DNA from: Anthoceros angustus
Lineage: Eukaryota > Plantae > Anthocerotophyta
Direction: 5' to 3'
NCBI GenBank assembly: GCA_010909165.1
Contig: MU008184.1
Coordinates: 62,001 to 126,000, forward strand
Length of the DNA stretch: 64,000 nucleotides
Both the position numbers and the translations under genes were made by a program. The notes below the pieces were generated by a model, which was given only the letters and a program-made list of their open reading frames with translations, made no database searches and was not told the origin of the DNA. Below are positions 21,109 through 56,309 of the stretch, in pieces (positions within the stretch are counted from its first letter, which is position 1; every line of letters begins with the position of its first letter).

Positions 21109-22447
21109 GCTGGCAGTGACATGAAAAAACGACACACCGTGGACTGTTATGTGGAAGTATCCCCCCGGCAATGGACAGCAGGCTCCTGTGCATGCTCCTT
21201 GGAGACAAGCACATGCGTACGAATATGTGGCCGCAAGGTTCTAGGAAACCCCTTGGACAAAACCGGGATCCAAAACCATGGGAGCTTCCTTTGCTGTGGG
21301 CGCTGCCCTGTTATGTTTTGCCATCATGTGGGCAAGAGAATGAAGACCAACCTGGTAGTGCAAGCGGTATCCAGGATGTCCCCAGGAGGGGCAGCCCGGG
21401 CACTGGTTCTCCTGTGTACACTGAATTGTGAAGTTCACACTGGCGAAGGGCAGCACCTGCTAGATGATCAAGTGTGAGCGGACTGGCTAATTTAACCTCC
21501 CTTGTCTCGGTAGGAATCTCTGAAAGCGTCTGGAGTGTCTGGTTTGCCCTCTGGATCCATCTGATACGAGGCAGGAAATTCCTTTCCACTGTACTGCATG
21601 TAGGGTACATGTGACCCTCTGGGTTCCTTGCATGTACTCCGGGCTGTACAAGTTGCCAGGAAGCGGGCCCGCCACACCTGCCGAGATGGGGCAGTGGGGC
21701 CCGGGCGCTGCCGAAGGGAGCGGTCCAACGCCAGCTGCCGCGTACAGTAGCTCAATCACAGTTTCACGACTCACGCACCGGCGTCCTGTGTCCTTTCCCC
21801 CTTCGCAGCCACCCAGATCCTGTGCGCTGCCCACCATGGCGCGCAGAAGGCGAGCGTGGCCTAGGAGACTGGTCCATCCAGCATGAGCGACTCTTATTAT
21901 CGCCGGTGCCAGCTGGAACGTGCCGTGCTCCAAATCGATCTCTCTCTCGGTCGTCTGTCATTATCCTCAAGCTTCTGATGAGCACAAGATGGAGAAATGA
22001 GATCGCCTTCAAGGAGGTAAAAATTGCGCTATCTCCGTCAGCGTTGCAGCGTCCCTGCCGCTCCCCTCTCTCCTCACTCTTTCCCGCGCCAGCCAGAACT
22101 GTTCACTCTCCACCTGCGGTGCAACGAGGAGGACACGCAGTGCCGGCAGCGGCTTCGACTCCTGTGATGGAGCAGAGAAGAAGCATCAGGCGGCATCCCC
22201 ATGACAGTTGCTTGAGCAGCAGGCGCCGCAATCTGCGTCCCGAGCAATGTGTGTCGAATGCTGCCTGCCCTCACGTGATCGTTGCTGGATCCGTCCTGCG
22301 CTGTGGGATGCAGCCCGGCTCCTGCCCTGATCGTTGCTCACTGCGGCTTGTCTTGTTCCCTGTCACAGATTGCTGATCGATGCGCTGAATACGGCGGGCA
22401 AGGGCAAGGGCAAGGGCGAGGGCGAGGGCGAGGCGAGCTCCGGCACC

Positions 22448-23578
22448 ATGTTTCCGCGGACGAGGCCGACGATGCCGAGCGGGAGGAAGGCCCGGAGCGT
22501 GCACATTGTGTGGTTTCTGGCGGTGGCGTACCTGTGCGGGGTGCTGACGGTGCCCCTGGTGACGCTCTCCGGGAGCGTAGTGGGACGCAGGCCCGCCGCG
22601 GGAGCTGAGCAGGTGAAGGTGGCGGATCCGGAGCCCGCGAGCATCGTCGCGGCTAGCATGGATGTGGCAAGGGCAAACCCTATCACCAGGCGGCCTCAGG
22701 CGGAGTCGAAGCCGCTGCAGTTCGATCCTTATTTGGTGCTGGACAGGAAGCATCCCACGGACTTCTACAGATTCAAGTCGGAGTGCCCCGCCGCGGTCAC
22801 CAATGCCGAGGATGTGCACGCCTTCATCCTGAACACGCTCTTCGACGGGGTGAGCCCGTTCGAGAACTTCCCCCCCGAGCACGCCGTGCCGTATCTGCAG
22901 AAGAACAATGTGAAGGGCTGGGGGTCTCGGACTAAGGTGTTCGAGCGGCTGGTGAACGAGGTGCAGCCGGAGGTGGTGATCGAGCTGGGAGCCTTCCTCG
23001 GGGCGTCCGCCATCCACATGGCCAACCTCACCCGGAACCTGGGCCTGCAGAGCATCATTCTGTGCGTGGACGACTTCCGGGGCTGGGCCGGCTTCCGCAA
23101 CATGTACCCGAAGCTCAACTTGGCGCAGGTGAACGGCAACGTCATGTTGCTCTATCAATTCATGCAGAACGTGGTGTCGGAGGGCTTCCACAACACCATC
23201 ATCCCCATCCCCTACGCCACCACCTCGGCGCTGTCCAAGTTCTGCGACTGGGGCCTGAAGGCGGATCTGATCGAGGTGGACGCGGGCCACGACTTCCACT
23301 CCGCCTGGCTCGACATCAACGAGGCCTTCCGAGTGCTCAAGCCCGGCGGAGTCATGTTCGGCCACGACTACTTTAACAAGTACATCGCAGCTACCTGACA
23401 ATCGCCTTCTCTTGTGCTACATGCTTGTTCTCACATTGCTCTCTTCTGCTCTGCTCTGCTGTTTCCTTACAGTTACGACAAGAAGGGTGTGGCCCGGGCA
23501 GTCGATCTGTTTGCCAAGACTTACGGCTTCCGGGTGGAGCCGGATGGCCAGCATTGGATCCTGCGGGACACTCCTTGA
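22448..23578 (+). CDS. Membrane-anchored SAM-dependent methyltransferase (Methyltransf_24-like), 2 exons
   Basis: N-terminal TM segment; VIELGAFLGASA, DLIEVDAGHDF and RVLKPGGVMFGHDY motifs; intron 23380-23472; last exon ...GVARAVDLFA...DGQHWILRDTP*. Confidence 0.9.
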
Positions 23579-27101: not shown

Positions 27102-28031
27102 TCACTCAGACCTCGCAGCAAACCGCTCCACCTTCTTGTCCGAGAGGTTAATTCCCACCATGGCCTCTCCCAAACCTGCGCTCACTTCAGCCAGGACGAC
27201 GGGGTCGTTGAAGTGCGCCACCGCCTGCACGATAGCCCGGGCTCGTTTGGCAGGGTCCCCGCTCTTGAAGATGCCGGAGCCAACAAAGACGCCATCGCAG
27301 CCGAGCTGCATCATAAGCGCCGCGTCCGCGGGAGTAGCCACCCCGCCTGCAGCAAAGTTCACAACAGGTAGCCTCCCGAGCTGCTTCGTCTGCCGCACCA
27401 GCTCATACGGCGCCTGGATGCTCTTGGAAAACGCAAACACCTCATCGTCCTCCATGCTCTGCAGCATCCTGATGGACCCGAGCACCGACCTCGAGTGCCT
27501 GACAGCCTCGATGATGTTCCCGGTACCCGCCTCGCCCTTGGTACGGATCATGGCGGCGCCCTCGGTGATCCGGCGCAACGCCTCCCCCAAATCGCGGCAG
27601 CCGCACACGAAGGGCACGCGAAAATTGTGCTTGTTGATATGGTTGTGGTCGTCCGCGGGGGTCAGCACCTCGCTCTCGTCCACATAATCCACTCCGAGAG
27701 CCTCCAGGATCTGCGCCTCCACGAAGTGCCCGATCCTGGCCTTGGCCATGACCGGGATGGTGACCGCGGCCTTGATCTCCTTGATCAGCTGCGGGTCGCT
27801 CATCCTGGCCACCCCGCCCTCCGCTCTGATGTCCGCCGGCACCCGCTCCAGGGCCATGACCGCGGCCGCTCCCGCCTCTTCCGCAATTCGTGCCTGCGCC
27901 GCGTCCACCACGTCCATGATCACGCCGCCTCGCAGCATTTGCGCCAGGCCTACCTTCACAGCGTACGACGATTTCTTGCTGTCGGTCATGACGCCATTGC
28001 CGTAGAGCGCCACCACGCCGTTGTTGGCCAT
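27102..28031 (-). CDS. PDX1: Pyridoxal 5'-phosphate synthase subunit PDX1, intronless, 309 aa
   Basis: [63 protein letters not shown]. Confidence 0.99.
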
Positions 28032-32624: not shown

Positions 32625-33002
32625 AAGTATTTCTATTTTGGCCCCCTTTAATATCACTCTAATGCTACGATCTTCTCATAGAGAAGCCAATGTGCCGGCC
32701 CGACTCCGTTAGGTGAGGGGAAAGCATCGACAGGCTTTGAGGGTGAGAAAGCTGAACTCTGGTTGCTAGGCTAGGGAGTTTCCTTGTTAGCACTGGCAGT
32801 GCTTATGGTGCTCAACATTGTCACTGACGATAACCTGGACAGCGGGGATAAGAAGCACATGCAAGCATGAAATGTAGCACAAGACGCGTGGCCGCGGAGC
32901 CGTCCCTTTCCTCTTCCGACGCCCCTGCACAGCACGTACAAATGGAGCGGGGGAGGGAACATTCGTCCAGGACATGTACCACTACCACACACGCTCGACA
33001 TC

Positions 33003-33999
33003 ATGGCGAGCAAAGGAAAGGTTGCTATCGTCGCTGTGGCCCTGCTCGGGCTTGTCGCTCTGGCTGCGCTGCCGAGCGTGAGAGCAGAGAATGCAGGGTG
33101 CACCGGCGCGGGAGGCCCGGCCGGCCTCGTCAAGAGCTGGATCCATCACGCCCTCAAGCCCCTGCACCTGTCGCCGTTCTCGGACGCGTGCGAGCCTAAT
33201 CTGCGCGCGCTCTGCATCCCCGCCACCGCGCAGCTGCTGGAGAATCACGAGGGCCGCCACAAATGCGTGTACGAGGATATCGACGGCCACTTCCGCGTCG
33301 GCGTCGGCTACCGCCTCGACAGCGAGCGGGAGTCTCGCAGGAAGGAGCTCGGTGCGCTGCTCGCGGACTACCAGAAGGTCTGGTAATTCAATTCATCCGT
33401 TTTGTTGTGGTTGTGGATCGGGATCTGCATCCGCTGCAATGCTGATTTTGAAGACGCGGAGTTTCGAGATTGAAATGTTCGCTTTCTTTGTCGGCTTGCC
33501 GTGGTTGTTGCAGGTGCTGGAAGGAGAGACCTGTCTGAATGACTTCCAGATCAACGCGCTGCTGGCGCTGGACGGGAAGCGGGTTCTTGATCAGGCTGCG
33601 GACCAGGTGAAGGCCCTGGACGAGTTCTGCTGTGATGTTGCGGCCGTTTTCGGGGACATCGTGCATTCAGCCGGTACATACCTTAACCTTCCATGATGGC
33701 CTTTCACGTGCATGATGCGTCTCCTTCGAGACAAGAGAAATTAGGCTAGGCGGGAGCGTTTCCGATGCGCTGCTCACGATCGGTTGCAAATTGCCGTGGC
33801 AGGGCGGAAGGCGCTCGGCGGCAGCGATTTCCAGAGGTTCATCGAGAAGGCAAGCGCCAAGCGGTGGGAGGATGCCGCCGACGAGCTGCAAGAAACCAGG
33901 TGGTGTGACAAGCACAGGGATCGCTGCCAGGATAACATCGAAATCGTTAGAAAAGGCTGCGGTTCATCCTCCAGCTTCAGTTTCCGGCGTGGCGATTAG
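33003..33999 (+). CDS. Secreted phage/T4-type (GH24-like) lysozyme-fold protein, 3 exons (33003-33377, 33514-33673, 33803-33999), 243 aa
   Basis: Signal peptide MASKGKVAIVAVALLGLVALAALPSVRA. HEGRHKCVYEDIDGHFRVGVGY aligns to T4L [21 protein letters not shown]. C-terminal RWEDAADELQETRWCDKHRDRC..IVRKG aligns to T4L [26 protein letters not shown]. GT-AG introns join in phase (732 nt). Confidence 0.8.
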
Positions 34000-34434
34000 A
34001 TTGTAGATCATACCATGGTCGTTCTAGCTTGTCACTAGTGTGAAAGCATAGTGACAAGTCTGTGCGCACATTGCTATATGTAGGTACCGTGTTTCGATAC
34101 TGTCTAAGAAGCAAGAAATGGAGATAATATGGGTTCAATATTAAATCTGCTTTGTGCTACGCTGTTGTCATCGCACCATGCCCTGCTCGATTTCACAAAA
34201 CGAAATGAACGGAATGGAAGTGCCTGATTGAAAGGCGAGGGTAAAGTAATAAGGTGCCAAGGTGCCTGAGAAGATGCCACTCTCAGTTAGGTCTTTGTTG
34301 CTGTTGCTTAAGCGCACAGGCTCGCTGCATGGTGCGAGGTGATGGCGTTGGGGGCCTGGAGAGGACAAGACGCAAATCGGGGGGGGCTATAGGGCCGCGG
34401 CTTGGATCGGGGGGATTGTTAGCTCTGGAGCGCC

Positions 34435-35979
34435 ATGGGTGACGAAGCGGGAGAGAAGGAAGGTTCCGGTGCGGGGTGGGGATGGGGAGGCTGGGGCTCC
34501 TCCGCCTTCTCCGTGCTGTCGGGCCTGCAGAAGGCGGCGGGGGAGGTGTCCAAGACGGCGGTGGCGGCAGCTAAGTCGGCGGTGGATGGAGTTGCGGGGC
34601 TGCAGAACAGCTTGGTGGAGGAAGGAGAGGGCGCGGAGGAGGAAGAGGACGGGGACTATGTTGCGCTCAAGAGCGCGGAAGATCTGGACTTGGACAACGC
34701 CCCGGCCATGCTGGAGGCCGTCTCCGGCTTGGATGAGCAATTGCGGAAGACTTCCTTGGATAAGCTGGAAGCGGCCAGCAAGGAGTCGATTCTTGGCCAC
34801 GGGCTCAAGGTGCTGGATGAATCCGTGGAGAGCCTCACGTCGGGAGCGTTCCAGGCGCTGGAGACGGCGTGGAAGGGAGGTGTCAATCTTGTGCAAAAGT
34901 TCGAAGTTTCGGCTGAGCAGCTGGCCGGGAGCCTGCAGCAGACCGGATCTGGGATCACTGCCAAGGCGGGCTCGCTGGCGCCGCAGCTTATTGAGAGTAG
35001 CAGAGCCTTGACGGCCAAGGGGATCCATGTCTTGGAGATGGTGGGGAGGGAGACTATGGAGATCCTGGCTACCGAGACGGGGATTGAGCTTGAGGAGGAT
35101 GGGAAGGAGACTGACGGGGGTGATGCGGGAGACGATGAGGAGTTTGCGGACGAGTTGTCTTTCGATCGGTGCTTTTACATATATGGCGGGCCGGAACATA
35201 TGGAGGAATTGGAGGCTCTGTCCAATCACCACTCCTTGTTGTGCAATCGAGCGAGGGCTAAGCTTTCTGGAGAGCAGAGGGCCTCGTTTGATACTCTTTT
35301 AAAGCAGCTGCATCACACTTTGTTTCGTGATAATATTGACGGAGTGGCCGGCCCGTTTAAAGGCAAGAATGTGGATCTGGATTCTGCCCTCATCAGGAGT
35401 GAGGTGATGAGTTTGCGGGAGGCCAGTGTTGCCAAGGCTAAAGAGATGGCAACTGGTTTGGGACCTACTCTTGCCGGTTTGGCCGTATCGGAGATCGTCC
35501 AGAAGACTGCGGATCGGCTTGAGGAGATAAGGACAGAGGGCGTGCACAGGGTCTCGGAGCTGTGTGCTCTCTGTATTTCCCAGCTGCTTCAGTTAGGTAA
35601 CTCGGTCCTGGCAACCTCTGCTGACGAAAAGGGAAAGGCAGTGGATGATGGCATTGACTGGCCTGCCGAGGGCACTGATAAAGCTGCTCTTCTGGAGGCC
35701 CAGGCCCAAGCCTTGGTTGACGACATTCAACTTGTTTCGAGATGCTTCATCTCTGGACTTGTAGATGTGATTGCTGGATTCAATGCTGCCGTCAAGTCGG
35801 ATGCAGTCGTGGCCAAGGGAGATGCCGAACTTGATATTCTTAAGGATGGGTTTGTTGAAGAGAAGGCAGCAGCAGTGGGCAGAGAACTGAAGCTTCACAG
35901 TGATGCTGCTTCAGAAAAAGTTCACGAGGGGCTCAAACATCTCACGCCTGTTGTCCTGTGGACTTGTGTGAAGAACTGA
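34435..35979 (+). CDS. Conserved plant protein, At2g15860/BAT2-like (FAM114-related), intronless, 514 aa
   Basis: GWGWGGWG N-terminus; GLKVLDESVE; FDRCFYIYGGPEHMEELEALSNH. Confidence 0.8.
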   Translation: MGDEAGEKEGSGAGWGWGGWGSSAFSVLSGLQKAAGEVSKTAVAAAKSAVDGVAGLQNSLVEEGEGAEEEEDGDYVALKSAEDLDLDNAPAMLEAVSGLDEQLRKTSLDKLEAASKESILGHGLKVLDESVESLTSGAFQALETAWKGGVNLVQKFEVSAEQLAGSLQQTGSGITAKAGSLAPQLIESSRALTAKGIHVLEMVGRETMEILATETGIELEEDGKETDGGDAGDDEEFADELSFDRCFYIYGGPEHMEELEALSNHHSLLCNRARAKLSGEQRASFDTLLKQLHHTLFRDNIDGVAGPFKGKNVDLDSALIRSEVMSLREASVAKAKEMATGLGPTLAGLAVSEIVQKTADRLEEIRTEGVHRVSELCALCISQLLQLGNSVLATSADEKGKAVDDGIDWPAEGTDKAALLEAQAQALVDDIQLVSRCFISGLVDVIAGFNAAVKSDAVVAKGDAELDILKDGFVEEKAAAVGRELKLHSDAASEKVHEGLKHLTPVVLWTCVKN

Positions 35980-38476: not shown

Positions 38477-39382
38477 ATGTCGTCTTTGGGGCCCGACGCA
38501 GCCCCGACTAGCAGAGAAATTCTGGCCTCGTACGTGGTGGAGCTGGCCTCTCCCTGTCAGGAGGAGCAACGGAGAGCAGTGACGGAGCTCAGAGTGCTGT
38601 CCAAGTGGAACGCCGGCAACAGGAATACGATTGCGGACATGGGAGCGCTCCCGCTGCTGATCAGGATGCTGCGCTCCACGGACGACAGCATTCAGCAGAG
38701 CGCCGTGACCACGCTGCATAACTTGTCGGTCCAAGGGAAGAACAGGGAGCGGATTATCAAGGTCCCGGGGGCGCTGGATGGGGTTGTGGCGGCTGTTCGG
38801 GAGGGGATTACGATGGAGACGCGGGAGAATGCAGCGGCGCTATTGTTTAGCTTGCTGGTGGTGACGGAGTTCAGGGTCACCGTAGGGAATCATGCTACCG
38901 CAATTGAGGCGCTTATGGAGCTCTTTAGGGATGGGAGCGGGCGGGGGAAGAAGGATGCCATCAAGGCCTTGTTTCATCTGTCTTTGTGTCCGGGGAACAA
39001 GCCTAAGGTTGTGGCCGCCGGGATTATTCCTAGCATCGTGTGCTTGCTGCTTGATAGAGATGCCCCGGCTCTGGTGGAGGATGCCTTGGCTCTGCTCGCG
39101 GTTTTGGCCACTTGTGCGGAAGCTCAGGCCGTGGTGGCCGAGGTCGGTGCCGTTCCGGTGCTGGTGAATGAGCTGGGAATTGGCTCTCCCCGCTCTAAGG
39201 AGCAGGCGGCCAGCACCTTGCTTGTGCTGTGTGAGCACGGCGGGCAGACCATGGTGGCCGAGGTTGTGGCGGAGACTCGATTGATGTCGTACCTTAATTT
39301 GCTGCAGGCCAGGGGCACGGAGCGGGGCAGGACAAAGGCTAATTCTCTCATTACGTTCTTGGTAACCTATGAGGCACAGTAA
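38477..39382 (+). CDS. ARM-repeat-only protein (PUB-type ARM domain without a U-box), intronless, 301 aa
   Basis: ELRVLSK..NRNTIADMGALPLL, RENAAALLFSL, RGKKDAIKALFHLS, KEQAASTLL; no U-box in the ORF. Confidence 0.9.
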   Translation: MSSLGPDAAPTSREILASYVVELASPCQEEQRRAVTELRVLSKWNAGNRNTIADMGALPLLIRMLRSTDDSIQQSAVTTLHNLSVQGKNRERIIKVPGALDGVVAAVREGITMETRENAAALLFSLLVVTEFRVTVGNHATAIEALMELFRDGSGRGKKDAIKALFHLSLCPGNKPKVVAAGIIPSIVCLLLDRDAPALVEDALALLAVLATCAEAQAVVAEVGAVPVLVNELGIGSPRSKEQAASTLLVLCEHGGQTMVAEVVAETRLMSYLNLLQARGTERGRTKANSLITFLVTYEAQ

Positions 39383-49188: not shown

Positions 49189-51535
49189 TTTTAGTCATGA
49201 GGATTGAGTACTTGGCTACTGGTAAAGAAGTTAGCCGTTAGGTATATATGGACACTAGATTCGTAAAGAAGTTAGTCGTTGGCATGTAAGGACACAAGAT
49301 CTCTGATGCGAATAAAATCAATATAGAGATATATGTCCAAGCTGTGCAATCCGAATCCCGGCCAATCCTAGTACATGCAGTGCATAATGACAATTTCGAA
49401 CACAGTCCGGTCGTTCGCAACTCGTCACATCATTCAGTAGGACGCGCTCTCGATTTCCTTGTCCTTCACTTCTCATATGATATTTAGTAGGATGAGCTCT
49501 CGATTTCCTTATCCTTCACTTCTCATGTGATACTCTTTGCGGATCCTTCACGACTTGTCACATCATTCGACAACACATGTTCTCAAATTTCCCTATCCTC
49601 CATGTACATGTTTCTCATCCGTAACTTCTTTCGACTTCCTAGTCAAAATCAGAGTACGCGTTTTGCACATGAGTTTAAACATGAGTGTACTTTGTTCATG
49701 ATTCATACTGAGTCCTTGTGAAATCGCGTGTTACATACATATGGAGCTGTTGTTTATTAATATTTGATCATCATTCTATCACACTGTGTACTACATTGTA
49801 AGCCGATGCATGCACTTTATAGCCTGTTAGCATGAGGCGGCCATGCGCCGAGGGAGCCGCGGTGGGAACTGTGGTATGCGAGATAAAACTGGCGTCATTG
49901 CCGGGTTTGGGTTTCGATCCCGATCCCTATCCCTGGGAGAACGGTTGCTGATCAGTGCAGTCCAGTAAGCTCAAGTAATGCAGATTTTGCACCAATCTGA
50001 TGACTGGGCTGCATCCTCCTGACTGCCGGCCACTCTCTGACTCCTGACTGCTACAAACACAACATACGGCATGTACAGTATTTTTGTGTGGAGGAGATGG
50101 CGGCAGCCTTCCAGCCAGCTCCACTGTCTGACACCTTCTCCCACGCCCCCTATTAACAACACGTACCTGTAGCCTGTTATCCGCGACTGCCCAAAGGCCG
50201 TCTCTGTAACACCTTGTTTTTAACTCGCGCGCTAAGCTCCAGGATTAGCACACATTCAAACAAAGCCAAAGCCGGGCATGGCCGGGCCGAGTGCATGTTG
50301 GGCTCCGACTCCCGATCCAACAACAGAAGAAAAGAATCCTTGCTTGGAAACACATGTTTGGGGAATCACGACCAACTCTGGGTATTCTTCCCTTGCCAGC
50401 TGCCAGCCTTGGTGGAATATACATTTGATTTCGCATCTGCATCTCGATGCGCTCCCCCCTCCTTTGACTTGGATTCAAAGTTTTGAATTGAAACAAGTGA
50501 ATTTCGGCACTGCACTCTCTGGCTCTCGGAGTCCAGCCGAGTTCGGTGATATTTCAGGCCGTGGCAAGCGGCGAGCAGGGCTCCCGGATATTTGTTTATG
50601 ACGGTTCCGGGCGGCGGTTCCGGGCGGCGGTCCCGGTCACCCACGCGTACACGCGTCTGCTTACCCGAGCCGCTCCCGGATTGTGTCCGCGTATCGTATG
50701 TGTGCGTGCGACGGGTAGCCTTCTGCCACGAGGATATGGACGGCGCGGGGAGGGTAATCAAACCCCGGGTTGGGCCCCCCCTTGCCGCTGCCGCCTTCGG
50801 GGAAGCAGCGCTGCTGGCCCGCACTTGCCCGGTCTGTTCAAGGCCGAGAGCGGGCGGGTAAGAGTGAACAGTGATGGAGAGAGGGGAGAGAGTGGTAGAG
50901 CGAGAGGCTGAGCGAGCGAGTTCCAGAGAGAGGGAGAGAGTGGTAATGCGGCTTTAAGGAAGGGTCCTGCGTCTTGCTGCAGGGTTGAAGCGCTTGCCAT
51001 AGCTGATGAGCTGTGCGTGACTGGGAGAACAGCGTGAGCGAGTGAGCGCGAGAAGCACACAAGTAGAAGCGGACGCAGAAGCAGTCTCGGAAGCGGAGTC
51101 CAGTTGAGCAGGGCTTGTGGCCTGTCTCCCTCCTTCCTCTTGTCAACGTAAGTCGGCAGAAGAAGAAGCCTCTGGGTGTGGTGGCGGTGGCGGTGCCGGT
51201 GGCGGTTGGCTGTCTTGTATGTGAAGCCTGCCAGGGGAGACCATTCTGCCATCACTCCTGCATCTTGTAGCTCGCGACCGGGGCTTGCTGTCGGTGTCGT
51301 CGAGACCGGGGAACGTGGCCGCAACACAGCCTGGGGTTGCGGTGCTGAGGGGAAGCCTACATGTTGGCAGGGGATGCGGTTCTGGTGAGGGTGAGGTGAC
51401 GATGCGGAAGGGATCGCGGCTGCTGTTGCTGTGACGGAGCGGAGATCTGCCTGAGCTGCTGCTCAATATTGAGTGTTGGTGAAGTGAAAAGCTTGTGAGT
51501 GGAGTGGTGTGCGGTGTCGGTGTCGGTGTGCGGGT

Positions 51536-53830
51536 ATGGCATTCCCTTCCGAGCCTACGTCGGGGGGAAGTGCGAAGGATCCTCCTGCGGAGCACAGGAG
51601 GAAGTATACGGAGTTAGGGGCCCGGCCTTCTCCGCCCTCGCTCATGAGGCGGAGGTGGCCGGTGTTTGTGTCGGCGGGGTCGCCGTCTAGTCCTTCGGCG
51701 ATGTCGCTGGTGCGGCTTTTGATCGGGCTGGTGCAGGATGTGGCGGCTTGCGAGAAGCCGCGGGTTGTGCAGCGGAGGAACGCGGCGAATATCATGCGGA
51801 GGATCAAGTTGCTTTCGCCATTGTTCGAGGAGCTGAAGGATAACCGCCCGCCTCTGCCGCCTTCTGCGGTTCTGGCCTTCCGGGAGCTGCATGTGATTCT
51901 CCAGCGGGTGAAGCTGTTGCTCGATGATTGCAGGGAAGGGAGTTGCATGTTCTTGCTCATCGAGAACGAGGCGGTGGCGAGGGACTTTTTTGACCATACG
52001 CAGCAGATCGCCGGTGCCCTGGAAGGTGTGCCCTTGGAGTTGCTCGATCTGTCGGACGAGGTGAAGGAGCAGATAGAGCTGGTGCGGGCGCAAGTGAAGC
52101 GGGCCAAGATCTATCTCGATCCGCAGGAGGAGCAGCTGAGGAATGAGGTGCTGGAGCTGCTCAAAGAAGTAGAGAGAAAAGAAGCGCCAGAAACCGGACG
52201 CCTTGGTTCCTTGTTTCAGCGGCTGCGCCTGTGCAATACCAGGGACTGCCAGAGAGAGATGCAGCTGCTGGAGGAGGAGATGTCCAATCAGCTTAGCAGC
52301 AGCAAGGATGTTGCTGCCTTCATCAACAGTTTGATCAGTTTTGTGAGATTTGGCAAGTGTGTGTTGTACGGCGTTGCGGAGATCGAGCCGGATAGTCCCC
52401 GAGACCTGTCCAGAGCTAACTCTAGCTCGGAGGTGTCCACCAGCGGCCAGGACACGCTCGTCAACCCCCCCGACGAGTACCGGTGTCCAATCAGTCTGGA
52501 TCTGATGAGAGACCCTGTGATAGTTGCTACAGGTCAGACTTATGATCGGGCGTCCATCGTTCGGTGGCTGGATGCAGGCAACTCTACATGCCCCAAGACT
52601 GGACAGAAGCTCATTCATGTGTCTTTGATTCCCAACTATGCCCTGCGAAGCCTCATCAGCCAGTGGTGCGAGGATAATCGTGTTCCTTTTGACAACTTTG
52701 ACAAGGACAGCAGGCATGCAGGGGTTGATCATATCGAGATTACTAAGGCAGCTTTGGAGGCTACCAAGATGACTGCTGCATTTTTGGTCGGGAAGTTGGC
52801 AACAGGCTCTCCTGAGGTGCAGAAGCAGGTAGCTTACGAGTTGAGACTGTTGGCTAAGTGCGGGATGGACAACCGGATGTGTATTGCGGAAGCGGGGGCT
52901 ATCCCGTTCTTGGTCCCTCTGCTTGCCTCCAGAGACTCCAAGACTCAGGAGAACGCCGTGACGGCTCTTCTTAATCTTTCCATCTATGAGAATAACAAGA
53001 AGCTTATCATGGCCGCTGGGGCTTTGGATCCCATCTTGGATGTGCTTAAGGATGGCATCACTATGGAGTCCAGGGAGAATGCTGCAGCCACCCTCTTCAG
53101 CTTGTCAGTCGTTCATGAGTACAAGATAACCATTGGCAATAGGCCTTCAGCCATACCGGCGTTGGTTGATCTTCTTAGGGAGGGCACCACCAGAGGGAAG
53201 AAGGATGCTGCTACGGCTCTCTTCAACCTTTCTTTCTACCAGGGCAACAAGCTCAAGGTTGTTGCTGCTGGAGGCATCCCTCTACTGGTGGACCTTCTCA
53301 CAGACGAGAGAGCGGGACTCACTGACGACGTGCTGGCAGTGTTGGCCATCCTAGCTGTGAGTTCTGAAGGCCTCAACGCCATTGCTCAAACTGCAGCTAT
53401 TCCAGTGCTGGTGAACTTGTTGAGATTCGGATCAGCCAAGGGAAAGGAGAACTCCATTGCTGTACTGCTGGCCTTGTGTAAGAACGGAGGAGATGATATC
53501 ATCCAGATGGTTTTCAAGATGAACACTGCTATTCCCTCACTCTACACGTTACTCACCAACGGCACCTTGAGGGCCAAGAGGAAGGCAAGCTCTCTACTGA
53601 AGACTCTCCACCGGTGGGAGCCGAGTGCAGTGAATAATGCTGCTGCCCAGGGACATTTCCGGGATGCTGGACATCACAACGTGCGAGTGGAACCATCAGG
53701 ACCCCAGGTGATCTCACAGCCTCCCGTAGCAAGTTTGAACCATGCCAACCAGCGGGACCCGGTGTTCACCGCTCAGCAGAACAACTTGCACGACATCACC
53801 TCTCGGTTTTCCAACTTGGTGAGTGTCTAA
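51536..53830 (+). CDS. Plant U-box E3 ubiquitin ligase (UND + U-box + ARM; PUB17-like), intronless
   Basis: U-box PPDEYRCPISLDLMRDPVIVATGQTYDR..CPKTGQ..LIPNYALRSLISQWC; ARM repeats AYELRLLAK, RENAAATLFSL, GKKDAATALFNL. Confidence 0.95.
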   Translation: MAFPSEPTSGGSAKDPPAEHRRKYTELGARPSPPSLMRRRWPVFVSAGSPSSPSAMSLVRLLIGLVQDVAACEKPRVVQRRNAANIMRRIKLLSPLFEELKDNRPPLPPSAVLAFRELHVILQRVKLLLDDCREGSCMFLLIENEAVARDFFDHTQQIAGALEGVPLELLDLSDEVKEQIELVRAQVKRAKIYLDPQEEQLRNEVLELLKEVERKEAPETGRLGSLFQRLRLCNTRDCQREMQLLEEEMSNQLSSSKDVAAFINSLISFVRFGKCVLYGVAEIEPDSPRDLSRANSSSEVSTSGQDTLVNPPDEYRCPISLDLMRDPVIVATGQTYDRASIVRWLDAGNSTCPKTGQKLIHVSLIPNYALRSLISQWCEDNRVPFDNFDKDSRHAGVDHIEITKAALEATKMTAAFLVGKLATGSPEVQKQVAYELRLLAKCGMDNRMCIAEAGAIPFLVPLLASRDSKTQENAVTALLNLSIYENNKKLIMAAGALDPILDVLKDGITMESRENAAATLFSLSVVHEYKITIGNRPSAIPALVDLLREGTTRGKKDAATALFNLSFYQGNKLKVVAAGGIPLLVDLLTDERAGLTDDVLAVLAILAVSSEGLNAIAQTAAIPVLVNLLRFGSAKGKENSIAVLLALCKNGGDDIIQMVFKMNTAIPSLYTLLTNGTLRAKRKASSLLKTLHRWEPSAVNNAAAQGHFRDAGHHNVRVEPSGPQVISQPPVASLNHANQRDPVFTAQQNNLHDITSRFSNLVSV

Positions 53831-54754
53831 GCCCAAGGCTGAGAGTGAAGTCAATTCTTCGCAGGGTTCTTGGATTTGAGAGGATGGGTTTTGGTAAAAA
53901 GTAGCCGAGAGTCGGATCAGGAGCTCTTGCAAGTCGCCTGAGTTTTATCCAGTGAAGTAAAGTCCATGTCGGGCTTCATGGCATTGGGTCTGTCATGGTG
54001 TTGGTTGGACGAATCACCTGAAGCACGGCATCAACCTGCCACCCTCGCCATGGAATCAAGAGGCTCCGGCAGTTGAGTCTATAGAGGGCATTCTTTTCGT
54101 TAGAGTATGTATCTCAAGGGGAAGTCCTGATGTACATATGTGACGAGTCTCATGGTTTCGTGGTGATCTATTCATCGATTCTTTTCACTCAATTCAATAA
54201 AAGCTTCCGCAAGGAGTCCCGCTCTCAAGTGCGTGTGCCCTCCCAATACCCGCCGTATCTCTTCTTTCCACCTCCCCCTCCTGACAAAAGCTGTCCACTC
54301 TCTCACCTCTGTTCAGCAAGCAGCACGCAAAGATCCGCCCATCCTGGGCCACACCGGTTGAATCGCCGTCGAAAGCGCGCCCAAGTTGGGCAGTTGAGCT
54401 CGGCGGTAGCGTGACTGACCCTCACCGTGTCGTCACCAATCCGCCTTCTGGAGTCATCTAGAAGCCGTCAGTCACCGGGATTTGTTAGACAGACTTATAG
54501 CAGCACCCCGGCTGTATGCTGTATCGCTGTATCCGGCGGCCAGGTCAAGAATCGTATCTTATGTACAGATGTCATAAGCTAGATTCAGCTAACAACATTA
54601 TCTATACCTACTGCTAAAAAAACGCTAACTACATTACCTGTCACTAACCATGAAACTGCAATCACACGAAGAACGATGGACACCAGCGGCAGCAGCTCCA
54701 GCCATGGTTGATCTAGCTTGTGCGACTGACAATCGTGCACGCGACTGTGAACAG

Positions 54755-56309
54755 AATGCTGGCTGTCAGGACCGGGCCCTGTTGCTCTGATTTGGTGTGC
54801 AACCCTCGGCCAACAGGGGCCTACGATGCGGGCCGCAATGCGAGGAACAGGAACTTGCTTCATCTAGGCTACCGTGTATCGCATCCCTCCTCAACGATTT
54901 GGACTGGCAGGAGACGGGGGCCGAGCTGTGGAGTTTCAGGAGGGGCCTTAGGAGCGAGCATGGCGGCTGTGGAAGCTCCGGTAGGGCTTCCGAGCTGGGA
55001 GACTCTGCAGGAGAGGCTGGAAGGGTTTAAGCCCAAGAACGGAGGTGTGAGGCTGGCGCATGCCACAGAGCGGCTCTTCGGCTCAGACACGGCCCCCGCG
55101 CTGCTTCTGTACAGGGACAACTCCGCATGGTGCCCTTACTGCGAGCGAGTGTGGCTGCAGCTGGAGGAAAAGCAGATTTCCTACGCCGTGGAGAAGATCA
55201 ACATGCGATGCTACGGCCCCAAGCCCGACTGGTTCACAAAGATGGTGCCCTCCGGCCTGCTCCCGGTCATAAAGCTGGACGGCAAGGTTGTCACGGAATC
55301 CCTGGACATTATGCTGCTGCTGGAGACGAGGTTCCCGGATCGGAATCCGCTGCTGCCAGCCAAGGGCACCCCGGAGAACGATGCACTGCCGGGGCTCCTC
55401 AGGCTGGAGAGGGTCCTCATGGGGAGCTGGCTCTCTTGCATCAAGAGCTTCTGGGATACATCCTCTGATTTTTCTAATTCTCTTGATAAGGTGGATGCTG
55501 CATTGCGGACATTCGGGGGCCCTTATTTCCTGGGTAGCAAGGTATTGCCTGTGTCTCACCCCCTGTGCTGTATGTGTACATTGAACTGGGGGAGCTTTTG
55601 GGAGGATTATGCTTGTGGTTCACACTGGTCTTTGGCTCACAGGTGTCTTTTGTCTCATGTGCAGTTCTCATTGGTGGATGCTGTTTACGCACCTTTCCTT
55701 GAGAGGATGGCTGCTTCAGTTCCGTATTGGGCAGGTCTCATCATACGTGGGTCACCGAGGTGGCCAGCACTGAATGCTTGGTACGATGCTATGGACACTA
55801 GGCCAATTTATCATGCCATCAAGTCGGATGACTTCACCATCACTCACACGCTGGAGCCTCAAATTGGTCCTACAAGCTCTAAGCCTAAAGGAGCTGCTTA
55901 CCGAGAAAAGATTGATGGAAAAGGTGGTCACTGGGATTTACCTCTCAAATCAGAAGAGACTGCCTGGGGCAAGGACGATGGTACTGGTGGGGGCGGGGCG
56001 AAGGAAGAAGCTGCACTAGCTCTAGCAGGCAACCACCACGCTGCTGTAGGATTTGGCCTCCGGGGTGTGCAAGATGGAGAAAGGTTCCGGAACGATGTGG
56101 ACTTGGCTTTTCGTCACGCTGCATATGCCTTGCTGGTGGGAGTCGAGAATGCAGGCAAGTTTCCCACGGGTCTACCACAACAAGTTGCTGTCGCGGCTGC
56201 TTACTTGAGAGACAGGGTGGGCGTGCCCCGTGACTTGACTTACCCTGCAGCCAGGCAGTTGCGAGCTCACTTGCAGTGGGTTGTTAGAGAACTGGGATCA
56301 GATTTGTGA
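54755..56309 (+). CDS. Cys-type glutathione transferase, iota-class-like, with plastid-transit-like N-terminus; intron 55542-55664; start codon uncertain
   Basis: YRDNSAWCPYCERVWLQLEEK, KINMRCYGPKP and VTESLDI motifs; C-terminal YLRDRVGVPRD..AARQLRAHL extension typical of algal and cyanobacterial iota-like GSTs. Confidence 0.85.

Follow-up and report, generated by a model that had tools for sequence, protein, structure and literature searches.

An expressed three-exon gene of the hornwort Anthoceros angustus belongs to a streptophyte protein family homologous to GH24 (T4-type) lysozymes

Gene structure, expression and protein features

The window analysed here is a stretch of 64,000 nucleotides (nt) from the genome of the hornwort Anthoceros angustus (GCA_010909165.1, contig MU008184.1, positions 62,001 to 126,000 of the forward strand). 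It contains a gene whose product belongs to a family homologous to glycoside hydrolase family 24 (GH24), the family of phage T4 lysozyme (T4L). An earlier note, made from the sequence of the window, had proposed a three-exon gene for a protein of 243 amino acids (aa) at this locus, and the exon coordinates, the open reading frame (ORF) and the spliced transcript contigs of relatives all agree with that model (Table 1). When the exons were joined, the 732 nt gave 243 codons and a stop codon, and internal stops were absent.

When contigs from the sequencing runs X4, X6 and X10 were compared with the window, both introns were found to be exactly absent from them. These runs come from three studies and three organisms, all of them relatives of the window strain with about 93-96 % identity. 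As the contigs are spliced, they must derive from processed transcripts, and the RNA label of the runs is a guess. The X4 contig uses the same splice site at intron 2, with two changed letters on each side of the joint (four across the junction), and a contig of run X1 represents the unspliced form of the gene. Downstream of the stop codon the X4 and X6 contigs show numerous small indels, which fits untranslated sequence. Thus, the locus is an expressed, spliced three-exon nuclear plant gene; the lack of a spliced transcript, which the earlier note had named as a finding that would speak against it, was not what we observed.

The gene is under purifying selection. Intron 1 differs from the X-run relatives at 13 of its 136 positions among the differences listed (about 10 %), and the exons differ at about 3-5 % of positions. 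In the part of the domain encoded by exon 1, 4 of 168 positions (2.4 %) are different, two of the changes being synonymous and two Ser-to-Thr. Between exon 2 and that of the closest relative found (locus L001, see below), pN was 0.15 and pS 0.77; synonymous sites in the comparison with L001 are saturated (pS 0.74-0.87) and dN/dS is not estimable. Amino acid differences among the X-run relatives are mostly located in the leader and the N-terminal extension, where the X6 transcript contig also has an in-frame insertion of 6 nt (two residues) at window position 33109.

The N-terminus of the protein begins with basic residues, followed by a hydrophobic core of 17 residues (Kyte-Doolittle mean of 3.14 over 12 aa) and a VRA/E site, as judged by eye and by hydropathy. 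Hydrophobic N-terminal leaders are also present in all full-length relatives in the family. The signal peptide of the earlier note was therefore observed as a hydrophobic leader with VRA/E, its cleavage being predicted at most, and the protein would be secreted by the classical pathway. It was also described as having about nine cysteines; the protein is indeed Cys-rich, with an actual count of 10 (residues 33, 63, 71, 88, 132, 164, 165, 213, 220 and 231). Eight of these are conserved in the family and two are lineage-specific, lying in an N-terminal extension common to the window protein and L001, and the window protein probably forms four or five disulfides. The GC content at third codon positions (GC3) is 0.73-0.83 in the exons and 0.64-0.88 in neighbouring ORFs, so the host-like GC3 noted before falls inside the range of neighbouring plant ORFs. 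The introns have a GC content of 47-53 %.

Table 1 Coordinates of the features described in the text (UTR, untranslated region; GST, glutathione S-transferase)
Feature	Position in window	Strand	Remarks
Whole gene	33003-33999	+	three exons
5' UTR, minimum	32989-33002	+	X6 and X10 contigs start at 32989 and 32990
Exon 1	33003-33377	+	125 codons; ORF, splice donor AAG/GT, spliced contigs
Leader, signal-peptide-like	33003-33086	+	part of exon 1
N-terminal extension	33087-33209	+	exon 1, after the leader; lineage-specific, 2 Cys
Catalytic N-lobe	exon 1 after 33209	+	CIP..HEG..VGVGY..LADYQK; aligns to T4L 6-35 and family homologues
Glu83 codon (GAG)	33249-33251	+	equivalent to T4L Glu11, general acid
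Asp92 codon (GAT)	33276-33278	+	positional equivalent of T4L Asp20
Arg98 codon (CGC)	33294-33296	+	positional equivalent of T4L Thr26
Intron 1	33378-33513	+	136 nt, GT..AG, phase 0; same position in L001 and L002
Exon 2	33514-33673	+	160 nt; central helices, motifs CLND..QI..ALLALD..CCDV
Intron 2	33674-33802	+	129 nt, GT..AG, phase 1; position conserved in L001 and L002
Exon 3 including stop	33803-33999	+	C-terminal lobe KRWEDAADEL..TRWC..DRC..GC; aligns to T4L 110-157, E 0.006
3' UTR, at least	34000-34098	+	X4 and X6 contigs extend to 34098 and beyond
Methyltransferase	22334-23398
PDX1-type SOR/SNZ gene	27105-28031	−
DUF7798 ORF	34435-35979	+	514 aa, uninterrupted; E 5.5e-85; 436 nt downstream of the lysozyme-like gene
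PUB-ARM/U-box E3-ligase-type ORFs (two)	38477-39382 and 51509-53830	+
GST-like ORF	54720-56309	+

Homology, fold and distribution of the family

The products of the exons were searched one by one, and the joined 243-aa sequence was concatenated only locally for codon and Cys counts and a small tree. In the PDB sequence search, aa 78-107 of exon 1 aligned to T4L 6-35 (E about 0.4) and exon 2 had no match. The exon 3 alignment to T4L (Table 1) matches Lys124-Arg125-Trp126, Leu133, Arg137-Trp138, Arg145 and Gly156, which bears out the likeness to T4L that had been noticed for the C-terminal RWEDAADEL..RW helix. Pfam gave no match for the three separate exon products even at E 10. When full-length homologues were compared with Pfam PF00959, three relatives scored 14.1-19.2 bits and the others were not matched (gathering cut-off 22.3 bits), and none of the streptophyte homologues listed with Pfam data bears a precomputed Pfam domain. 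A family profile of 14 members, in turn, gave a single collinear alignment covering T4L 6-157 (E 5e-4), and the top PDB matches were all T4L.

The homologue P0014 is 35-51 % identical to the window exons, and the alignment is gap-free at the exon joints. P0014 was modelled with AlphaFold2 (AF2) from an alignment of 28 rows, among them the window and L001 exons as separate rows, and the model had a predicted local confidence (pLDDT) above 93 through residues 50-215. When this model was compared with the PDB using Foldseek, T4L was found with a probability of 1.0 and a TM score (by target) of 0.72-0.77. This is the outcome of the profile and AlphaFold/Foldseek check suggested in the earlier note, with PF00959 remaining below its cut-off. 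Structural comparison of the same model gave the highest Z scores for T4L (16.6-16.8; e.g. 201l with a root-mean-square deviation (rmsd) of 2.7 over 150 residues), followed by pesticin (14.1), P22 lysozyme (13.7), DLP12 endolysin (13.5), the SpmX muramidase domain (PDB 6h9d; 12.6) and a fungal GH24 muramidase (8b2s; 12.4). An affinity to GH46 chitosanase was rejected, its Z score being 8.1 as compared with 16.8 for T4L. Neighbours in the ESM Atlas, whether by features or by shape, were Phage_lysozyme clusters only (shape rmsd 1.9 over 162 residues).

The family is thus homologous to GH24 and has the T4L fold, profile, hhalign and P0014-model structure searches concurring with the assignment made in the earlier note. 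The fold of the window protein itself is predicted by its alignment to the modelled homologue. With T4L it would have in common a fold of two lobes spanning about 150-160 residues (collinear in sequence at 6-157), and equivalents of T4L Glu11, Gly28/Gly30, Trp126, Trp138 and Arg145 are present. However, the identity is about 20 %, the window protein has a leader and eight conserved Cys (T4L has no such disulfides), and its gene, unlike the phage gene, is nuclear, eukaryotic and intron-containing.

When the 97-aa mature part of exon 1 was used in an exhaustive HMMER search, 17 proteins with E ≤ 1e-3 were found among 1.84 billion representatives. The named members belong to the Zygnematophyceae (Closterium spp. 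and Spirogloea muscicola), the Charophyceae (Chara braunii) and the liverworts (Riccia fluitans and Calypogeia fissa); no seed-plant protein is among the 17, a result obtained with a 97-aa query and few named sequences. The named members are annotated as "hypothetical", "unnamed" or "secreted", and none is characterised. The earlier note had held that orthologues widespread among land plants and known for a role other than that of a lysozyme would be a counter-argument; such orthologues were not encountered, as those found are all uncharacterised. The remaining members are transcript-sized contigs and eukaryotic contigs from metagenomes. Many matches are exon-1-only gene calls ending just past "LADYDK-V", as a prokaryote-style gene caller reading into the intron 1 donor would produce, and the three exon products tile full-length homologues with no gaps at the exon joints. 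A profile search with a family alignment returned eight proteins, and the window's own protein was not among them. When the exon-2 part of the 201-aa ORF at 33091-33693 was used as the query, the L001 product was the only match, the two exon 2 products being 78-79 % identical.

Some relatives show features of their own. The closest one, L001:5382-6530 (a Logan contig of SRR33208241), is 63 % identical over the domain, has the same three exons and intron phases, and carries the hornwort-type N-terminal extension including its two Cys; the hairpin at its catalytic site is longer by three residues and includes two additional cysteines (VYHCGEVEDKRDRCIGVGY). A further member with the same two introns and phases, L002:3400-5198, is located on a 159-kb ENA metagenome scaffold from a eukaryote often encountered in metagenomes of environmental samples, and apparently has an extra upstream exon encoding the signal peptide. 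In Closterium sp. NIES-68, the 397-aa protein P0019 consists of a signal peptide and two tandem T4L-like domains. The tree of 14 domains was almost unresolved, with only the pairing of the window and L001 supported (91/81), and it provides no test of vertical descent or of a donor; the two domain copies of P0019 are each other's closest relatives in it.

P0017, the weakest of the 17 matches, carries the canonical residues, with Asp at +9 and Thr at +15 from the Glu. Among its relatives are a protein of the haptophyte Prymnesium polylepis (P0057) and many marine sequences, and of the 22 relatives listed, 10 score above the cut-off of Pfam PF00959. This haptophyte-type group (P0056-P0070) is the closest sequence group outside the streptophytes. 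When six of its sequences, five of them with PF00959, were aligned with the streptophyte family using hhalign, the match had a probability of 99.8 % (E 2.8e-29) over 154 columns, and the seven Cys inside the aligned span match. Both groups have N-terminal leaders and the same eight-Cys pattern (one Cys before HEG, then CVY, CL.D.Q, CC.VQ, WC, RC and GC), and they share the motifs HEG, GxGYNL, ADYD, CLxDxQ, CCxVQ, WC, RC and GC. The haptophyte-type proteins, however, keep the Glu/Asp(+9)/Thr(+15) triad whereas the streptophyte family is without a conserved Asp and Thr, and they have Pro/Lys-Thr where the streptophytes have Arg/Lys-Ala. Because of the common Cys pattern, the profile match and the lack of such disulfides in T4L, the two groups appear to form one disulfide-rich eukaryotic GH24 branch in which they are sister-like. 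Where the sequences first arose among phages or bacteria is to be sought deeper than this branch.

On the same sequence comparisons, the family appears to predate the split of Charophyceae, Zygnematophyceae and land plants, and the introns, the host-like GC3 and the wide streptophyte distribution mark the gene as an old genome resident rather than a hornwort acquisition. The earlier note had proposed an old, domesticated acquisition. Its age is upheld by the shared intron positions, GC3 and streptophyte range; the data do not point to a gene passed straight from a phage or bacterium to a land plant, since the nearest canonical relatives are eukaryotic. We also considered contamination, a recent phage or bacterial transfer, or a chance ORF. 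The best structural and Atlas neighbours are indeed phage lysozymes, but three related organisms splice the two spliceosomal introns out of their transcripts, homologues of other streptophytes have these introns too, the composition is host-like, the neighbours are plant genes and the closest sequence relatives are eukaryotic. The likelihood of this explanation is negligible, and contamination or recent horizontal transfer was rejected.

Catalytic site and proposed activity

The catalytic loop was tabulated for 28 distinct variants across the family. At the acid site (T4L Glu11), Glu was found in 23 variants and Asp in five, and nothing else was observed. The position eight residues further (+8, T4L Lys19) is Asp, Asn or Glu in 26 of 28, and +14 (T4L Tyr25) is Arg or Lys in an equal number. 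At +9 (T4L Asp20), Asp is found only in the window protein and the haptophyte-type P0017, the others having Leu, His, Ser, Lys or Thr. At +15 (T4L Thr26), 24 variants have Ala, two Gly, one Thr (P0017) and one Arg (the window protein). Thus, the window loop stands apart: it has Glu-Asp at +8/+9 and Phe-Arg at +14/+15, and Arg at +15 appears to be peculiar to the window lineage among these variants. Loss of the Asp20/Thr26 pair, as far as the alignment tells, is a family trait older than land plants. The Trp138 counterpart is kept in all full-length members and that of Arg145, which pairs with the acid Glu11 in T4L, in most of them.

A subgroup (P0008, P0009, P0010, P0021, P0023, P0024, P0051 and P0054) from metagenome and transcript contigs has Asp for the Glu (HDG, HDK or HDA for HEG), and the remainder of the domain is still conserved in it.

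A catalytic triad rewired to Glu, Asp and Arg had been the central claim of the earlier note. The three residues are indeed spaced as in T4L Glu11/Asp20/Thr26 (+9 and +15 from the Glu). What does not hold is that the change is special to this gene, because the whole streptophyte family is without Asp20 and has Ala at the Thr26 site. In a global alignment with L001, Arg98 is placed opposite the conserved +14 Arg of the family and the +15 residue is unmatched. What looks like an exchange of Thr for Arg may therefore reflect a shift of the conserved Arg by one residue and not a new catalytic residue, and Asp92 may likewise be the +8 Asp/Asn/Glu of the family after such a shift.

It follows from the original claim that the hornwort copy could have re-created a T4L-style triad of Glu83, Asp92 and Arg98 and be a hydrolytic muramidase whose stereochemistry or specificity is altered. 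The window protein has Asp at +9, as hardly any other member does. The differences listed for the three related organisms (X4, X6 and X10), which seem complete as far as 33525, alter none of the three residues: the Asp92 codon changes synonymously, and Glu83, Phe97 and Arg98 are unaffected. Moreover, substitutions of Thr26 are described as switching the mechanism of T4L, T26H being reported to become a retaining enzyme (PMC5606550). However, the loop of the sister copy L001 is different and longer and contains two additional Cys, Arg98 aligns with the conserved +14 Arg, and hydrolysis of the T4L type is not known to proceed with a bulky cation in the position of the water. We consider a re-created triad unlikely.

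The reading that we prefer, and to which we give somewhat better than even chances, is an apoplastic, peptidoglycan-directed enzyme that uses a single catalytic acid. The protein would be exported to the apoplast or mucilage and would bind a peptidoglycan-type glycan in the T4L-like cleft. The glycan would then be cleaved with Glu83 as the sole essential acid, and not by the inverting mechanism of T4L, in which Asp20 and Thr26 activate a water molecule. The biological role would be antibacterial or the processing of peptidoglycan fragments. Goose-type GH23 lysozymes and lytic transglycosylases, among them lambda lysozyme with its GH24-type fold, have one essential Glu and no Asp/Thr pair. The residue situation of the streptophyte family matches theirs, a likeness of residue pattern and not of compared sequences, and the pattern of a kept Glu and lost Asp and Thr is compatible with a single-Glu mechanism of the lytic transglycosylase type. 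An enzyme is preferred over a pure binder because all 28 variants have a carboxylate as the acid residue, which has thus been strictly kept over a long time span.

Several points weigh against this reading, above all the absence of the base and the subclade in which Glu has become Asp. Of the three catalytic residues of T4L, two are missing family-wide; since Asp20 and Thr26 are required for hydrolysis in T4L, the protein may be inactive. Five of the 28 variants have Asp in place of Glu at the acid site, an exchange that nearly abolishes activity in T4L and hen lysozyme, and in the window protein an Arg at the Thr26 site would fill the place of the attacking water. In addition, the signal peptide is putative, and the fold of the 243-aa window protein is taken from the gap-free alignment to the modelled P0014.

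The same observations lend some weight to a pseudo-enzyme, a secreted protein that would have retained the T4L fold to bind peptidoglycan or some other glycan without hydrolysing it, and would serve as a sensor or decoy, or as a module that sequesters fragments or localises the protein. Besides the family-wide loss of the Asp20 and Thr26 equivalents and the Asp for Glu in 5 of 28 variants, it is suggested by the tandem domains of the Closterium proteins, a lectin-like arrangement, and by the SpmX muramidase domain among the structural neighbours (Z 12.6). The SpmX domain has the T4L fold and is used in bacteria mainly for localisation, its use being largely non-lytic. SpmX, however, is a bacterial polar organiser anchored in the cytoplasmic membrane, and it has retained its catalytic residues. 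A carboxylate at the acid site in every variant, together with the Arg145 counterpart in most full-length members over hundreds of millions of years, is unexpected for a binder. A pseudo-enzyme is thus a real but distinctly less probable alternative to the single-acid enzyme.

The family could also remodel the plant's own plastid peptidoglycan instead of acting on foreign bacteria. Plastid peptidoglycan is retained by charophytes, bryophytes, lycophytes and ferns and has been largely lost in seed plants; the named members are only charophyte algae, liverworts and the hornwort, and the 17 representatives include no seed-plant protein. Against this, the leader is of the classical hydrophobic secretory type and not a Ser/Thr-rich transit peptide, eight conserved Cys suit an oxidising extracellular compartment, and the taxon range comes from the 97-aa query and a small number of named sequences. 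We regard this as very improbable. There is also a slim chance that the streptophyte proteins are T4L-fold enzymes that gave up the Asp/Thr pair for a different chemistry, e.g. as the first plant lytic transglycosylases. Plastid peptidoglycan or signalling fragments could then be the substrate, as the family range coincides with the lineages keeping plastid peptidoglycan.

Relation to published work and genomic surroundings

Lysozyme activity in plants is normally credited to GH18 and GH19 chitinases. In the literature searched, no paper on a plant or streptophyte-algal protein family of the GH24/T4L type was found, and "lysozyme" in Anthoceros papers refers to the lysis of E. coli. The Anthoceros angustus genome paper lists 14 families acquired by horizontal gene transfer and does not mention lysozyme (PMC7027989). 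Phage-type lysozymes of bivalves are GH24 genes resident in eukaryotes (PMC5303276), and the GH24 muramidase of Trichophaea saccata (PDB 8b2s), the fungal enzyme among our structural neighbours, has an added SH3-like wall-binding domain (PMC10394673). Both are precedents for a secreted antibacterial use of GH24 in eukaryotes. They come from other lineages, however, and are reported to be active muramidases, and no plant or streptophyte member was found in the two papers (PMC5303276, PMC10394673), where the published lysozyme transfer into plants is cited as GH25.

The fold and the superfamily are thus thoroughly known, and what is new is a Pfam-invisible, disulfide-rich, triad-reduced GH24 family of streptophytes. 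It is missing from CAZyme surveys because standard domain annotation does not detect it. Charophyte algae, liverworts and hornworts are hereby recognised as possessing an old and conserved protein family with a phage-type fold that is also expressed, and the family is a candidate player in the dealings of early-diverging plants with bacteria or peptidoglycan. The family can also be regarded as a natural experiment, in which the model enzyme fold that has been studied most is left with a single catalytic residue. As Anthoceros agrestis and Marchantia-type liverworts are transformable and the protein is small, the question can be tested now.

For a role in managing the Nostoc symbiont, which had been put forward for the hornwort gene, no support was found. 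The family is also present in non-symbiotic Chara, Closterium and Spirogloea and in liverworts; it is older than the Nostoc symbiosis and is thus not a hornwort invention for managing Nostoc.

The gene had also been placed next to an island rich in transposable elements, and this was not confirmed. No transposon domain was found in the window ORFs that were scanned, no direct repeat of at least 120 nt is present in the window, and three ORFs between 28.9 and 31.7 kb had no meaningful Pfam match. The scanned ORFs that could be assigned are plant genes, among them those listed in Table 1 on both sides of the lysozyme-like gene.

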